Below the pieces are notes generated by a model, which saw nothing but the letters and a program-made list of their open reading frames with translations, was not told the origin of the DNA and ran no database searches. Below, in pieces: positions 3,319-60,898 of a DNA stretch of 64,000 nt. A program made the translations under genes and the position numbers. Numbering within the stretch: the stretch's first letter is position 1; every line of letters starts with the position of its first letter. The stretch is taken from the NCBI RefSeq assembly GCF_040938485.1, contig NW_027271496.1, positions 930,001-994,000 of the forward strand. The letters are read 5' to 3'. The DNA comes from Diadema antillarum. Lineage: Eukaryota.

Positions 3319-6300
3319 ATGGCCGACTTCGTGGGTGACGATATCGCTCCCCTGGTCATCGACAACGGATCTGGGATGTGCAAAGCTGGCTTCGCAGGGG
3401 ACGATGCGCCAAGAGCTGTCTTCCCTTCCATTGTCGGCAGACCGCGGCACCAGGTAAGACAATTATATAGTTAAAGGGATCGTAAAGTTTTGGTTGAGAC
3501 CTAATTTCAGGTTTCTAACATTTTCTGGTGAGATAATGAGAAACCTCTTATGAAATATGAAAGAGCATGTAATTCTATGATGAATTCAACGTTTATTTGA
3601 TGAAAATTGGTTTTGAAATGGTTGAGACATTCAAAAAAGAGCGATTCTAAACAGTGTGGGACCCACACTTTATTACGATCGCTTTGTTTTACTTTGTTTT
3701 TGGATGTTTCAGTCATTCCAAACTCGATTTTCATCAAATAAACTTTGAATTTCTCTTAAAATGGTATGCTCTGTACTATATCATAAGTGTTTTCTTGGTA
3801 TCTCGCAAAAAGTTAAAAGTCCAATTCTCATCTCCACCAATACTGTACCATCCCTTTAATATCTTCTGACAGTAATATATAGGCCCTATATATATATATA
3901 TATATATATATATATATATGATATACAATGCAGTCTCGTTATTACGAAACAGCTATAACAAATTCTCGATTTAGCGAAGTCGAATTATTCCTGTCCCAAA
4001 ATTATTATCTATATATCTGTATGTAATTTTTCTGTTTGGCTACAGCGAAATTTCGATACATAATAAAAGTGTGCGTACTTGTTTTATTTTCTGTTTCCCG
4101 CGGACTATGTCAAATTGTCTTGTTGCATTATTGCTATAATTTTCACGACTCACGAGGGGACTGCATTCTACAAGCTTGGCTTTTTAGCAGTCCCCTCCAT
4201 TTCCGACCTTTTCTTTCTTATGATTCAGTCACATTTTGCCCATGTATTTTTTTCAACTAGTATGTTTATTGAGTCATGTAAACAAATGACGTGTATCTAA
4301 ATTTCATTTGGAAATGTAACAATTACATTGTACTTAATTTGTTTATATGAAATTGTCATATTATATGTTTTGGCCGGAAATGAAATAAAAAGGGAAAAAA
4401 AATGAAATGAAAAAAAAAAAAAAACACCGGTCCCGAGGACTTCGTTATAGCGGGAGTACACTGCACTCTAAAAGTGTTCATGATGTATATCATCACTCCC
4501 CCTAGCTTGTTCTCTCGATCTCTCACTTTTCTCACGTTACTATTAAATTCCAATGTCGGATTGTCTCTAGTAACTTAAGAAATGTTGTAAATTCCGGTAA
4601 ACAATAATCAAGTAAACTTAATGATAACAAATGTAACAATATTCTGAATTAGTGTGGGCCAAAGATCAACATGAGGTTATGTGTACACGTATGCCCTTCT
4701 CCAATACAAAGTTGCGGACGTTTATCGCCTGATTCTGAATTTCTGATTTTTTATTCTGCACTCTAAAAAAAAAGGACATTTAAGCTACCTATTAATCGTG
4801 ATACCAAAAGCTAACTAATCATCACCCATTCATGGGAGCATAATGTCTTTGTGTCTTTTTTTTTTCAAAACTATTATCTCAATATGTTAATGTGCTTTAT
4901 ATTATTATTACGTAATCAGATAATCATGGCTGGCATGGGATCCAAAGACAGCTACGTAGGAGACGAGGCCCAGAGCAAGAGGGGCATTCTCAGCCTCAAA
5001 TACCCGATCGAACACGGCATCGTCACCAACTGGGACGACATGGAGAAGATCTGGCATCACACGTTCTACAACGAGCTACGCGTCGCCCCCGAAGAACACC
5101 CGGTACTTCTCACCGAGGCCCCTATGAACCCGAAAGCAAACAGGGAGAAGATGACGCAGGTACATTACAAATTCCTTCTTTTTGACTTGTAATCGTGTCG
5201 TTATCTCTCTTAATTTTCGTCTTTGCGTCAGTTTGAATCGTCGTATGGTTCAGTGTCAGTAGAGTCACATTAAGTCTTCAAGCTTTAATAAACTACATTT
5301 CTTGGAAAATATATACCTGGTACAATACCGCTTCATTTCACTTATGTTGCGTACATGAGTTAGATCACTCGTTTTTCCCTCCTGTTGTTGGTAGGTTATA
5401 GCTAACTTTCTAACAAATTATGTAAGTTCTTCTTAGTTCTGCTCTATATTGATGTTGTCTTTCGCTCTGAATGTACCAGTTTTATCATCATTGTCACTTT
5501 TGATACTCAGTGGAACACCATCACAATTATTTTATCTAGCTTAGACGATGAAAAACAACGATTATGTGTCGTCAGGTAAGAAGTACATTAAACAAAATAC
5601 ACTTTTCACTTTTGTCACAGGTTACAGTTTGTAAATCCTCTGCTATTTGTGTAATGTACCATCATCAACTGACTTCCACAATGTGAAGCAACATTATGGA
5701 CTTATTCTTATATTTCGTTTCTGTGCAGATCATGTTCGAGACGTTCAACACACCAGCCTTCTACGTAGCCATCCAAGCCGTCATGTCCCTCTACGCCTCG
5801 GGACGGACAACAGGGATCGTCTTCGATGCCGGTGATGGCGTCTCCCATACCGTGCCGATCTATGAAGGCTACGCCCTCCCTCATGCTATCCTTCGTATGG
5901 ATCTGGCCGGTAGAGATCTGACAGATTACCTGATGAAGATCCTCACAGAGAGAGGCTACACCTTCACTTCCACAGGTAGAGATGATAATTTTTATAATAC
6001 ATTTCTTGCTTGAGTTTGAATTTATTGTTTGCATTTTTTTTTAATGTTTTAAACTTCAGTGTCATACATCACTTCCCTTGGGCAGTAGTCGAACACAGAC
6101 TAATATTTTTTTTTTGATCAAACTCCGAAACTGTACGTTCATTTCCGTTTGATTAATGAAGCACAAATTATGATAATCGTCTTACGGAAAGTACTGTTGG
6201 TGTCATGGGTTTTATAACTGGTTAGAAAATGTAAAGAACAAACAGATATTTAATTGAGCAATCTTGGAATTTTGTTTGTTTCACAGCCGAGAGAGAAATC

Positions 6301-57967: not shown

Positions 57968-60898
57968 ATGGATGACGACGTCCTAGATGATTGTGCCTTC
58001 GTCGTTGACCTGGGTTCTGGTCTTTGTAAGGCGGGGTTTTCCGGCGACGAGTCACCAAGGTTAAGCATCCCCTCCATCGTGGGCAAGACGAAGTATGAGG
58101 TAAGATATAGGAGATAATCAATCCTCTCTGTGCCAGGGACTTTGGACAATCATTCAAGGACAAGTCCACCTTCATATACATAAGGATTGAGAGAATGCAG
58201 CAATATTAATAGAACACATTAGTGAAAGTTTGAGGAAAATTGGACAATCCGTTCAAAAATTACGAATATAATTTTTAAGTATCTGCGCAGTCACGGCTGG
58301 AAGAGAAGACTACTACAATGTATGATGTCACATGCGTATAACTATATAAGGAAAATAAAAGAGAGAATTTCACAAAACTTTACTTTTTGAATAAAGTGCA
58401 CAGTTCTTCGACTTGCTACTGACGTATGTTAAAGGTAATATTATTCTCCCTGTCTTCTGAAAGAGAGAAGTCGAGTGTTCTTTTGTTATATATGGGAGAA
58501 AAATGGACAAATGTTGAATTTTCTTTATTCTTTCTTTATATCGTTGTACTCATGTGACATCACAAGCTATAGTAGTCTTTTCATCCAGCCGTGACTGAGC
58601 AGAAACTTTAAAAATTCATAACTTTTTAACGGATTGTCCGATTTTGCTCAAACTCTCACTGATGTGTTCTACTAATACTGCTGCATTCACTCAACCCACA
58701 TGTCTATATGAAGGTGAACTTGTCCTTTAATACTGTGGGGTTTTCTCTGCCATTATGAAGTTTGACACTCATATTACACAAAGGCTTAATCCATTGCTTG
58801 CAGAACCAAATGTATCCTGTGCAAAGTCTTTTGACGGTCTGAGAATATCGCAGGGAGTTAAAGGGAATGGCTAGTAACTGATCCGTGGGAATCAGTGGGA
58901 ATGCTGAGGGATGATTGTTCCAATCCTTGTGGGATTCATTTAAGAGTACATTATATATCTACTATTGTGTGAAAATGATTTGCTTCGAGAATGGTCTCAT
59001 ATTCAAGTAATGTACAGTTTAATGTTTCCAGGTTAGCGTGCCTGGTCAGTTACGGGGCATTAATCTGCACATTACTTGAATATGAGACCGTTCTGAAGCA
59101 AATCATTTTCACACAACAATAGATATACAATGAACTCTTGAATGAATCCCATAAGGATTGGAACAATCATCTCCCAGCATTTCCACTGATTCCCACTAAT
59201 CAGTTACTAGCCTTCCCCTTTAAATGAAAGCACAGAGGTGGGGGGGGGGGTGGGGGAGGGAAGATAAGAGAAGGGGAGAGTATAAGCACAGGAAAGGGGT
59301 GGGGTGTTCGAGCGACGGGATGGTGATAATGGACGACGTATTATTAACCTTCACTTCGTAAGCACAGCACTCATAGTTGTGACATTCATATTCACTGCTT
59401 CTTGTTTATTTCTTTAATTTGTCATTTGATTAAGTTTGATATTATGTTCCAGCATGGTTCTGTGATAAGACCTACAGAGAGAGATTGTAGAAATGTATTC
59501 TCAGGATTAACACATGTATTATGCAGTAATAGTAATAATGATAATNNNNNNNNNNNNNNNNNNNNNNNNNNNNNNNNNNNNNNNNNNNNNNNNNNNNNNN
59601 NNNNNNNNNNNNNNNNNNNNNNNNNNNNNNNNNNNNNNNNNNNNNNNNNNNNNNNNNNNNNNNNNNNNNNNNNNNNNNNNNNNNNNNNNNNNNNNNNNNN
59701 NNNNNNNNNNNNNNNNNNNNNNNNNNNNNNNNNNNNNNNNNNNNNNNNNNNNNNNNNNNNNNNNNNGCTCCTTCCCACTCAGTCTTAGTGCTCAAAGGGC
59801 ATGTAAATTTCCTCTGTACTCGACCAGTTGTGTTCGGTTCCACTAGTCCTATGGTCTCTCTGTGTCGTTCGCCTTGCAGAAACTTGTGCCTTTCAACGTC
59901 GACGATGATTCCATGAGCTACCTATACGTCGGGGATGGGGCCCAGTGCAGAAGAGGTCTTCTCCGACTCAGGCACCCGATCGACCACGGGGTCATCGCGA
60001 ACTGGGACGACCTGGAATTACTTCTGGAAAATATATTCTACAACAAGCTCCGCTGCGGTGCCGACGAACTCCCCGTGCTCCTCACCGAGGCAACGATGAG
60101 CCCGAAGTCGCAGAAAGAAAAGCTCGCGGAGGTCGGTCTCGTTTTCAATGTCCTAGCAGCAATCAGAAAGACCGCCAAACCAAGTTTTTCAGCAGGGCAG
60201 TTGGCCCGCAAGACATGTCCCAATCATTATGACGTCATAAGGAGAAAAGGGAAATTGGGAAGGGAGTATGATATGTAGAAGGATGAAGAGAATGAGGGGA
60301 AGAAAAAGAAGGTAAAAAAACCCCGCGAAAGTAACGTTATTAAAAGCAAGAAAAAAATGAAGATGAAAGAGGTAATAACGATGATGCTGATGATGATTAT
60401 AACGATGATGATGATTGTGATCACGATGATCATGATTATGATGATTGTGATGAAGGAGAAGAATACGATGAATAAGGGAGAAAAAGGATGGGTGAAAAAA
60501 TCATGAAAATCAAGGGGAAAGCAAAAAAGAAGATGAACAGGAGGTGCAATATTAGCAGGACATAAAGAAAGATTAAGGACAGAATAGAAGGAAGAATTAT
60601 TGCCCAAAAGTGCTTCATGAATTAATTTCAAATGTCGTAAATTTTCACCAGCTGATGTTCGAGAGTCTGGAATCCACAGCCCTGCACGTGGCCAACCAGC
60701 TCGTCCTTTCGCACCACGCCTCGGCCAGCGAAGGCGGCATCGTGCTCGATGTCGGTGACGGCGTCTGTCAAGTCCTGCCCATGTGTTACGGCTCCATCCT
60801 CACGGACGCCGCGCAGCGAGTCGATATGGGAGGAAGGGACCTCACGAAGCACCTGGTACAACTCCTCAATGATCGTGGTTGTAGCTTTCATACCACAG
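57968..60898 (+). CDS. A8: divergent actin-like gene, partial (coding exons 1-3; last exon not found in window)
   Basis: Exons 57968-58099 ([44 protein letters not shown]), 59880-60131 and 60652-60898 (247 nt, phase-1 donor). Open frame throughout. No actin-like exon 4 seen in 60900-64000. Confidence 0.87.
58157..58726. mobile_element. MITE family T-B, second copy (570 bp), in A8 intron 1
   Basis: AGGACAAGTCCACCTTCAT ... ATGAAGGTGAACTTGTCCT-TTAA. The left target site is mutated to TTCA. Confidence 0.85.
58862..59219. mobile_element. MITE family T-C (358 bp), near-complete palindrome, TTAA duplication, A8 intron 1
   Basis: TTAA-AGGGAATGGCTAGTAACTGAT ... ATCAGTTACTAGCCTTCCCCT-TTAA. Confidence 0.85.

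Follow-up and report, generated by a model that had tools for sequence, protein, structure and literature searches.

A clustered array of diverged actin genes in Diadema sea urchins, probably encoding lineage-restricted orphan actin-related proteins

Textbooks present actin as a protein that has barely changed in evolution. What, then, are the genes in the sea urchin Diadema antillarum that share the intron plan of a neighbouring actin gene and encode proteins only 47-52% identical to its product? They lie in a stretch of 64,000 nucleotides (nt), referred to here as the window, that spans positions 930,001 to 994,000 of contig NW_027271496.1 (JBFRCO010000608.1 in assembly GCA_040938485.1). The window contains one near-conventional actin gene, A1, and seven diverged copies, A2 to A8. 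With moderate confidence, we read the array as lineage-restricted ‘orphan’ actin-related proteins (Arps) of diadematid sea urchins: the diverged proteins have the actin fold, show no sign of belonging to a defined Arp subfamily and, among the matches listed, have orthologues only in the two Diadema species, and orphan Arps is the field’s term for such proteins (PMC7038667, PMC3064208).

A tblastn search with the A1 protein as the query returned 31 actin-like pieces in the window, which assemble into the eight genes below. The exon borders were placed by hand from the sequence, and all introns are GT-AG.

3319 to 6804, plus strand: A1, exons 3319-3453, 4920-5159, 5729-5975 and 6287-6804; near-conventional variant actin of 379 amino acids (aa).
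9899 to 12981, minus strand: A2, exons 12981-12847, 11794-11552, 11103-10857 and 10419-9899; in-frame TAA at codon 118, in exon 2.
15249 to 18912, minus strand: A3, exons 18912-18781, 18291-18049, 17379-17133 and 15769-15249; intact, 380 aa.
23391 to 27443, minus strand: A4, exons 27443-27312, 25937-25704, 25246-25029 plus 24455-24427, and 23890-23391; 370 aa without an inserted miniature inverted-repeat transposable element (MITE).
36818 to 40259, plus strand: A5, exons 36818-36943, 37459-37704, 38641-38875 (235 nt) and 39733-40259; intact, 377 aa.
42552 to 47081, plus strand: A6, exons 42552-42686, 43168-43407, 44382-44628 and 46561-47081; 380 aa.
50229 to 53761, plus strand: A7, exons 50229-50366, 51476-51703, 52212-52458 and 53250-53761; intact, 374 aa.
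57968 to 60898, plus strand: A8, exons 1-3 only, at 57968-58099, 59880-60131 and 60652-60898.

The original prediction, made from the sequence of the window, described a tandem array of eight genes with common intron positions and phases. The copies are indeed clustered; they are not arranged head-to-tail, since A2-A4 are read from the minus strand and the genes on either side of them, A1 and A5-A8, from the plus strand. The shared intron plan was recovered throughout, for A8 over its exons 1-3. Intron 1, in phase 0, lies 3’ of the Q41 equivalent, which is Q in A1, A2, A3, A5 and A6, with E at this site in A4 and A8 and M in A7. Intron 2, likewise in phase 0, follows the Q121 equivalent (E in A5 and A8), and intron 3 interrupts the frame near codon 204 in phase 1. 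The length of exon 3 is 247 nt in A1, A2, A3, A6, A7 and A8 and becomes 218 + 29 nt in A4 after excision of a 573-nt TTAA-flanked insert, which gives the predicted seven of eight; in A5 it is 235 nt. An intron at position 41/42 is known from deuterostome actin genes. The intron positions 122 and 204 are shared by actin genes from sponges to humans (PMC12146513).

The frames of A1, A3, A5, A6 and A7 are open. Protein identity among A2-A8 is 34-51%, except for the A2/A3 pair at 81%, for which the synonymous divergence (dS) is 0.35. Between the other paralogues dS is 1.2-2.4, which is saturated and makes the pairwise ratio of nonsynonymous to synonymous divergence (dN/dS) uninformative; we used dN/dS only for A2/A3 and for between-species pairs.

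The diverged copies are altered at catalytic and contact residues of actin. In rabbit actin numbering, D11, D154, G156, K213, E214 and G302, which form the scaffold of the nucleotide pocket, are kept in all copies, and the hydrolysis pair Q137/H161 is intact only in A1 and A4. The changes are as follows.

A2 and A3: Q137H; G15R or G15L; D157H or D157Q.
A4: G15L, D157A and G158S, with Q137 and H161 kept.
A5: Q137A, H161Q and D157E.
A6: H161D and G158S.
A7: H161D and K18R.
A8: H161Q.

Taken by site, A2-A4 lack G15, A2-A5 have other residues in place of D157 and H73, and Ser replaces G158 in A4 and A6. The D-loop of A2-A8 has a sequence unrelated to that of actin and distinct in each paralogue; M44 and M47 are replaced in every copy, and the loop length ranges from four residues shorter in A7 to four residues longer in A8. 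In the W-loop, Y169 is replaced by H, E, F or S in all diverged copies. A2-A8 thus depart from conventional actin in the catalytic and phosphate loops, the D-loop and the W-loop, and the prediction that A3, A5, A6 and A7 are open and yet altered at key residues of actin agrees with the intact frames and these residue states. Subdomain 2 is the least conserved region, at 38-51% identity to A1. The orthologues in Diadema setosum carry the same states at nearly every key site, the exception being A3b, one of its two A3-type genes, which keeps G13 and has D157H; because of this agreement, we regard the altered residues as settled features. Fifty positions are invariant across A2-A7, the D. setosum orthologues and A1. 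The equivalent of R177, a common toxin target, is kept in every copy except A3, and we rejected the idea of ‘toxin-site-free’ actins for this reason.

Despite these changes, the proteins belong to the actin family by profile, by matches to solved actins and by fold. The RefSeq entries for the products of A4, A6 and the A3-type gene carry the Pfam family PF00022, the top 60 matches in the PDB are all actin, and A3 exon 4 matches solved actin chains with an E value of 1e-56. An AlphaFold2 model of A6, built from a 50-row alignment, shows the actin fold with a mean predicted local distance difference test score (pLDDT) of 91, and superposes on Swiss-Prot models of 375-377 aa with template modelling (TM) scores of 0.94-0.97 at 49-50% identity.

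The array is also present in D. setosum, as the original prediction had proposed to check, with syntenic and intact A1 and A3-A7. On chromosome OZ188195.1 (6.735-6.808 Mb; ~5 kb between A5’ and A4’ left out), the order is A7’, A6’, A5’ ... A4’, A3a, an A4-like remnant, A3b, A1’. Exons projected onto this region gave open frames, equal exon lengths and GT-AG introns for A1, both A3-type genes, A5, A6 and A7, and the same for A4’ from exon 2 onward. The projected protein of the first A3-type copy equals its RefSeq protein exactly, and the splice model is supported for this reason. A3 is 86-87% identical to D. setosum XP_072170601.1 and 89-91% to the product of the XP_072170603.1 locus (91% by the hand splice model), A5 is 90.5% identical to its orthologue, with 377 aa as the called gene length in both species, A6 is 91% identical to XP_072170598.1, A7 is 96% and A1 is 98.9% identical to its orthologue. 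The A2-A4 block differs in content: it holds A4, A3 and A2 in D. antillarum, and A4’, two A3-type genes and a truncated A4-like copy in D. setosum. Of the truncated copy, which sits between the two A3-type genes, the 3’ part of exon 3 and the whole of exon 4 are left, 79-92% identical to A4; this suggests that a two-gene unit (A4 + A3) was duplicated and that one A4 copy then decayed.

14076-14162 and 23099-23566 of the retrieved D. setosum stretch (the latter equal to 4281-4748 of a second retrieved stretch): A4-like remnant.

Between the two species, where dS is 0.13-0.18, dN/dS is 0.034 for A1, 0.11 for A7, 0.13 for A4, 0.23 for A6, 0.26-0.38 for A3 and 0.28 for A5, and none of 200 codon bootstraps reached 1. 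The diverged genes evolve 4-16 times faster than A1 at replacement sites. Because the ratios lie at 0.11-0.38 with no bootstrap at 1, the diverged genes are under purifying selection, weaker than that on A1. This range, where decaying duplicates would give values near 1, and the intact D. setosum orthologues uphold the view of the original prediction that the genes are not decaying. Gene conversion with a constrained donor is an implausible source of the signal because the identities are 34-52%. Selection has maintained the array from the split of the two Diadema species onward, if not for longer, and the A2-A4 block is still gaining and losing copies.

Outside Diadema, the closest proteins are ordinary actins. 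We searched at full length with the D. setosum A3-type protein and A6 as the queries. Against 5.8 billion clusters, only Diadema proteins exceeded 55% identity among the matches listed, and the best non-Diadema matches were ordinary actins at 50-54%, spread over eukaryotes. Among the best 120 matches of the A3-type protein and of A6, every non-Diadema protein was an ordinary actin (42-54%), and none carried the name centractin, Arp2 or Arp3. When A3 exon 4 was compared with 1.84 billion representatives, a single close relative came up, from D. setosum at 86% identity, and the next matches were ordinary actins at ~55% or less. A2-A8, at 47-52% to A1, and the A3-type protein and A6, at 50-54% to the best actins, therefore lack the conservation of a conventional actin, and a best-hit ranking gave no orthology to canonical Arps for the A3-type protein and A6. 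The original prediction had placed the proteins outside the conserved Arp subfamilies, and for these two we saw no sign to the contrary. A ‘Centractin’-labelled UniRef protein, the sole one among 376 proteins, was tried as an Arp outgroup and rejected as an actin-like fusion; an AFDB cluster search returned mostly mis-annotated fusion proteins.

In a tree of 39 rows (LG+C20), three groups have support: (A4,(A2,A3)), (A7,(A6, A6-like)) and (A5,A8), the last of them subject to a long-branch warning. The grouping agrees with the strand blocks, A2-A4 on the minus and A5-A8 on the plus strand. A single clade for all diverged Diadema proteins had a likelihood slightly above that of the free tree (P value of the approximately unbiased test, p-AU, 0.69), and I192L, F266L, M313L and I329V are derived and common to every diverged copy in both species; these four shared derived residues fit a single origin of the diverged copies. 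A clade of the A1 type with all diverged copies was weakly disfavoured (p-AU 0.039). The claim of a local, DNA-level duplication of an actin gene is well borne out by the three shared intron positions and phases, the clustering and the agreement of clades with strand blocks. The further claim of a conventional actin as the parent stands in so far as an actin gene was the source; a parent of the A1 type is not required.

The array may have older roots. In Strongylocentrotus purpuratus, AAGJ06000013.1 (11.24-11.26 Mb; 11239435-11261922) carries at least three four-exon actin genes around XP_030838761.1, the A1 orthologue type. Over exons 1-2, the gene upstream of it is A1-like, and the downstream neighbour (373 aa) has a moderately diverged exon 1 (GSGTTRAG) with T16/T17/R18, of which T16 and R18 also occur in A2-A4 and A7. 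Because this syntenic cluster includes such an exon 1, the radiation may be older than Diadema. The predicted restriction to one lineage is hence only partly sustained: the array is common to two Diadema species with nothing closer among the matches listed, and the S. purpuratus cluster qualifies it.

A1 itself is 90.6% identical to ordinary actins, within the conservation expected of conventional actin (roughly 85-90% or more to animal actins), with intact catalytic and phosphate-loop residues. ‘Near-conventional’, as it had been called, is apt for its identity, and A1 is not simply conventional: it is a conserved echinoid variant with its own D-loop, IIMAGMGS. S. purpuratus XP_030838761.1, 89.5% identical to A1, shares this loop and the four-exon structure. 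Upstream of A1 we found a likely promoter, with a CArG box 719 nt and TATAAAT 663 nt from the ATG; D. setosum retains both motifs, at -722 and -666.

2600 to 2663 (approximate, computed from offsets), plus strand: likely A1 promoter, CArG box CCATATAAGG and TATAAAT.

No CArG box was found within 1.2 kb upstream of A2-A8. Because this CArG/TATA module is lacking there, the regulation of the diverged genes probably differs from that of A1.

The assembly also provides the second haplotype of the animal. Contig JBFRCO010000129.1 carries an allelic copy of the array at 93-99% nucleotide identity, and neither of the two D. antillarum haplotypes breaks the frame of A3, A5, A6 or A7. The other A2 allele has Thr at codon 118 and an intact frame of 381 aa (XP_071487917.1). 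The other A3 allele is intact in its coding sequence, with 2 replacement and 4 silent differences; its intron 2 contains a 4.1-kb insertion (5488-9639 of the retrieved stretch), and RefSeq annotates exons 3-4 only (254 aa). A4 is broken on both haplotypes by different lesions: in the window it has a MITE and a 6-nt deletion, and on the other haplotype it has no MITE and a TAA at codon 48. RefSeq XP_071501820.1 is exactly the MITE-free 370-aa product, and the locus retrieved for it agrees with 13391-37443 of the window without a single mismatch.

24456 to 25028, unstranded: MITE in A4 exon 3, 573 nt; terminal inverted repeats of ~170 nt with arms 88% complementary; TTAA target duplication on both sides.

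The insertion site is empty in the allelic contig and in D. setosum A4’. The element is short and non-coding, has terminal inverted repeats and a target-site duplication and occurs in several copies, as expected of a MITE. Related copies, 70-81% identical, lie at 58157-58730 (A8 intron 1), 39152-39612 (A5 intron 3) and 57622-57886 (upstream of A8), and a further one at an unlinked A6-like locus on JBFRCO010000089.1 (12632-13193 of the retrieved stretch).

From these observations, we propose the following origin. An actin gene with the old 41/121/204 intron plan would have been copied locally several times, with one inverted copy first and tandem copies within each block later. A1 would have remained a slowly evolving, CArG-driven variant actin, and the other copies would have diverged to 34-52% identity before coming under moderate purifying selection. 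The family is still in birth-and-death turnover: the sequenced animal carries null alleles of A2 and A4, and the content of the A2-A4 block differs in D. setosum. This evolutionary reading, with duplication at the DNA level into a tandem and inverted array, is well supported. As for function, the residues suggest that the diverged proteins keep the actin fold and perhaps bind nucleotide, and that they lack ATP hydrolysis and the standard longitudinal contact of F-actin. In that case, they would serve ordinary actin structures as specialised partners or modulators and would not be bulk filament subunits. Because the water-activating residues and the subunit-plugging loop are lost while the fold and part of the pocket are kept, the most likely role is that of non-canonical, probably non-polymerising or end-binding Arps with their own regulation.

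Several observations weigh against this reading. The loss of hydrolysis and of polymerisation is judged from residues only, and A4 keeps both Q137 and H161. Every copy retains D286/D288/R290 together with much of the hydrophobic plug, and most retain P243-G245; some filament contacts could survive. The A2-A4 block of the one animal sequenced comprises six allele copies, three of them null, which fits a weak or redundant function there. The two A5 haplotypes differ by 7 replacement and 0 silent changes, against 38:37 fixed differences (p = 0.015, uncorrected, two alleles), a pattern that, with two alleles only, could reflect relaxed constraint or diversifying selection. In the 39-row tree, which holds no Arp1-10 sequence, the diverged copies form long branches and the backbone among actins is unresolved. 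Finally, an RNA-only search of sequencing runs with A5-A6 listed no run, and no transcript-type assemblies were among the database cluster members of the diverged proteins. The run search with A3 exon 4 listed mostly DNA or unlabelled runs. Four of the seven A5 allele differences (36818-40259 compared with 3745-7213 of the retrieved stretch of the other allele) cluster at residues 95-105.

Other explanations differ in how well they account for these data. It is possible, although we doubt it, that the diverged genes encode specialised actin isoforms that still polymerise, into their own filaments or as co-polymers, for example in sperm, spine or tube-foot structures. The retained fold, the kept D11, D154, K213, E214, G302 and D286/D288/R290, most of P243-G245, part of the plug, the purifying selection and a length collinear with actin all speak for such isoforms. 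However, M44, M47 and Y169 are replaced in every copy, Q137/H161 or G15/D157/G158 are altered, subdomain 2 is just 38-51% identical to A1, and with a D-loop distinct in each paralogue no common new interface is evident. A bolder idea, which we consider unlikely, is that the diverged genes form a second self-contained set of actin-fold proteins with co-evolved interfaces, the D-loop and barbed-end groove being particular to each paralogue, making a defined hetero-oligomer or non-actin filament, or are baits for actin-targeting pathogen factors; the A2/A4 null polymorphism would then be maintained by selection. If true, such an interface-matched set or baits would mean that a deuterostome has put the actin fold to a new use. 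Decaying duplicates that are open by chance would explain the A2 stop on the window haplotype, the A4 lesions on both haplotypes, the absence of A8 exon 4 from the window, the A4-like remnant in D. setosum and the failure to find transcript-derived database members. Yet the frames of A3, A5, A6 and A7 are unbroken in D. setosum as well as on the two D. antillarum haplotypes, that of A4 is unbroken in D. setosum and that of A2 on one haplotype; splice sites and the lengths of the exons are conserved, and paralogues at dS > 1.2 have kept their frames. With dN/dS at 0.11-0.38 at a dS of 0.13-0.18 and no bootstrap at 1, decay is improbable for the family, and the between-species dN/dS refutes it for A3 and A5-A7.

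An identity of ~50% to actin is within the range for Arp1, and JGI labels some of the matches ‘actin-related protein’, so that a conserved Arp subfamily (Arp1-10) or a described orphan Arp family had to be considered. The JGI proteins, of 375-376 aa and 52-53% identity, are actin-like, the best non-Diadema and PDB matches are all actins, the introns are those of the neighbouring actin gene, and the proteins have no Arp-type insertions at lengths of 370-381 aa. We rejected membership in Arp1 on the ordinary actins among the best matches of the A3-type protein and A6, the introns shared with the actin neighbour and the collinear length; Arp1-10 as a whole are set aside because of the best-hit ranking, the shared introns, the actin-gene neighbourhood and the length, and we give the subfamily explanation very little weight. 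We give as little to immune decoys or guards, that is, actin look-alikes that bait actin-directed toxins or effectors. Null alleles and an excess of replacement polymorphism, as in A5, are common in immune families, and echinoid immune gene families are known to be expanded (PMC13511894); nothing in the window ties the genes to immunity, however, the R177 equivalent is kept except in A3, the selection between species is purifying and not diversifying, and a pooled McDonald-Kreitman (MK)-type test of the two alleles against D. setosum was not significant. The array could also be imagined as haplotypes placed side by side, in that GCA_040938485.1 retains both haplotypes at about twice the haploid size (PMC13511894). 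For the window we rejected such an artefact, whose chance we consider negligible, although it still bears on counts of actin clusters elsewhere in this assembly: the paralogues share 34-81% protein identity, far below the allelic level, the true allelic copy lies on another contig, and the same array is found in the independent chromosome-level assembly of D. setosum.

Orphan Arps of the lineage-specific kind are known mainly in mammals and flies, where they serve sperm formation, and the mammalian testis Arp genes are dispersed and mostly intron-poor. The mammalian proteins (ACTL7A/B, ACTRT1-3, ACTL9; PMC7038667, PMC3064208) resemble those of Diadema in having an actin fold outside Arp1-10 and in being lineage-restricted and diverged yet retained. 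They differ in that there is no orthology between them, the Diadema proteins being nearest to ordinary actins, and in that the Diadema genes keep three actin introns and form one tandem and inverted array. Drosophila Arp53D and the D-ActL1-3 and Arp2D genes of the obscura group (PMC7038667, PMC8291977) are likewise a lineage-specific burst of actin-derived paralogues, and D-ActL1-3 derive from actin genes. In MK tests, strong positive selection was detected on the fly genes, which are genes of the male germline (PMC7038667, PMC8291977), whereas the Diadema signal between species is purifying, with the pooled two-allele count not significant, and the Diadema duplications, having kept their introns, are clearly at the DNA level. 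HdA6 of the sponge Halisarca dujardini, a long-branch actin paralogue with the old introns 122 and 204 beside conserved actins, is expressed in particular cell types (PMC12146513); it is a single gene and less diverged, in contrast to at least seven members in Diadema, each with its own D-loop. The S. purpuratus cluster shares with the array an A1 orthologue type flanked by two more actin genes, and has a clear counterpart for A1 only. Conventional actin shares PF00022, the collinear length and the fold, and differs at the sites described above. The family is new in having no orthology to the mammalian or fly orphan Arps.

The orphan-actin phenomenon thus has precedents, and the array would be a third independent case, in an echinoderm. 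It is a readable one: a parent-type gene and at least seven derivatives lie adjacent with their introns, with one-to-one orthologues in a sister species and natural knock-out alleles in the sequenced animal. It thus becomes feasible to study how far the surfaces of actin can be rewritten without loss of the fold and what such proteins are for. The diverged genes are already in RefSeq, where A4 is ‘actin-like’ (XP_071501820.1), A2 and A3 are ‘actin-1-like’ and ‘actin-5-like’, and A6 is ‘actin, non-muscle 6.2-like’ (XP_071501807.1). Names such as ‘actin-1-like’ and ‘actin, non-muscle 6.2-like’ conceal that these are not ordinary actins, and gene counts in the uncollapsed assembly double the family. 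The word actin is absent from the genome papers of D. antillarum and D. setosum, our literature search for diverged echinoderm actins found no paper, and there is no searchable paper that describes the genes.

Some details of the A5-A8 block and its relatives remain to be added. The RefSeq model of A6 has 384 aa, with an acceptor 12 nt upstream of that in our model. An A6-like paralogue lies on JBFRCO010000089.1 (10001-17039 of the retrieved stretch), alone beside an SMC/Nse1-type gene, and the family therefore has members outside the array; it is annotated with 464-508 aa, is 71-73% identical to A6 and has the counterparts XP_071484088.1 and, in D. setosum, XP_072169957.1. For A8, neither tblastn (E up to 10) nor an exon-4 profile hidden Markov model (--max) found exon 4 in 60899-64000, the 3.1 kb to the end of the window. 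The expected place of exon 4, the 3 kb that follow A8 exon 3, is filled with G-run/C-run-rich elements. Such repeated elements at 28600-28900, 61000-61700, 62100-62640 and 63500-63960 give rise to spurious Gly/Pro-rich open reading frames (ORFs).

Four runs of N, all outside exons, interrupt the window, and the reading frames of A1-A8 are independent of them.

8033-8230: N run between A1 and A2.
49862-49999: N run 230 nt upstream of the A7 ATG.
55059-55195: N run between A7 and A8.
59546-59766: N run in A8 intron 1.

At the first run, the allelic contig is collinear across with equal spacing at 200 nt. The runs are probably masks, because the genome paper reports the assembly as gap-free (PMC13511894).

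The remaining observations concern introns and spacers. In A2 intron 1, at 12206-12733 on the minus strand, two short ORFs carry the terminal motifs LHWLPV..RI and then FK..L.THLF, which look like the C-terminal part of the reverse transcriptase of retrotransposons without long terminal repeats (non-LTR); the pair is a retroelement fragment. At 13216-13288, on the minus strand, a borderline Rfam tRNA match (29.4 bits, threshold 29) without an ARAGORN call is probably a tRNA-derived short interspersed nuclear element (SINE) or a chance hit. A6 intron 3 contains three tandem units at 45412-46225 with a period of ~325 nt; over 164 nt, the units agree at 73-82%. A near-perfect palindrome of ~2.15 kb (30676-32825) occupies part of the 9.4 kb that separate the divergently oriented A4 and A5. 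Its nested arms are 92-97% complementary, the longest of 587 nt, and it may be a trace of the inversion from which both blocks arose, or a foldback element. Finally, a 216-nt repeat, 94% identical, occurs in intron 1 of A1 (3648-3863) and of A7 (50804-51019), and since its copies are far more alike than the exons, it must be a mobile element that arrived recently and does not date from the duplication.

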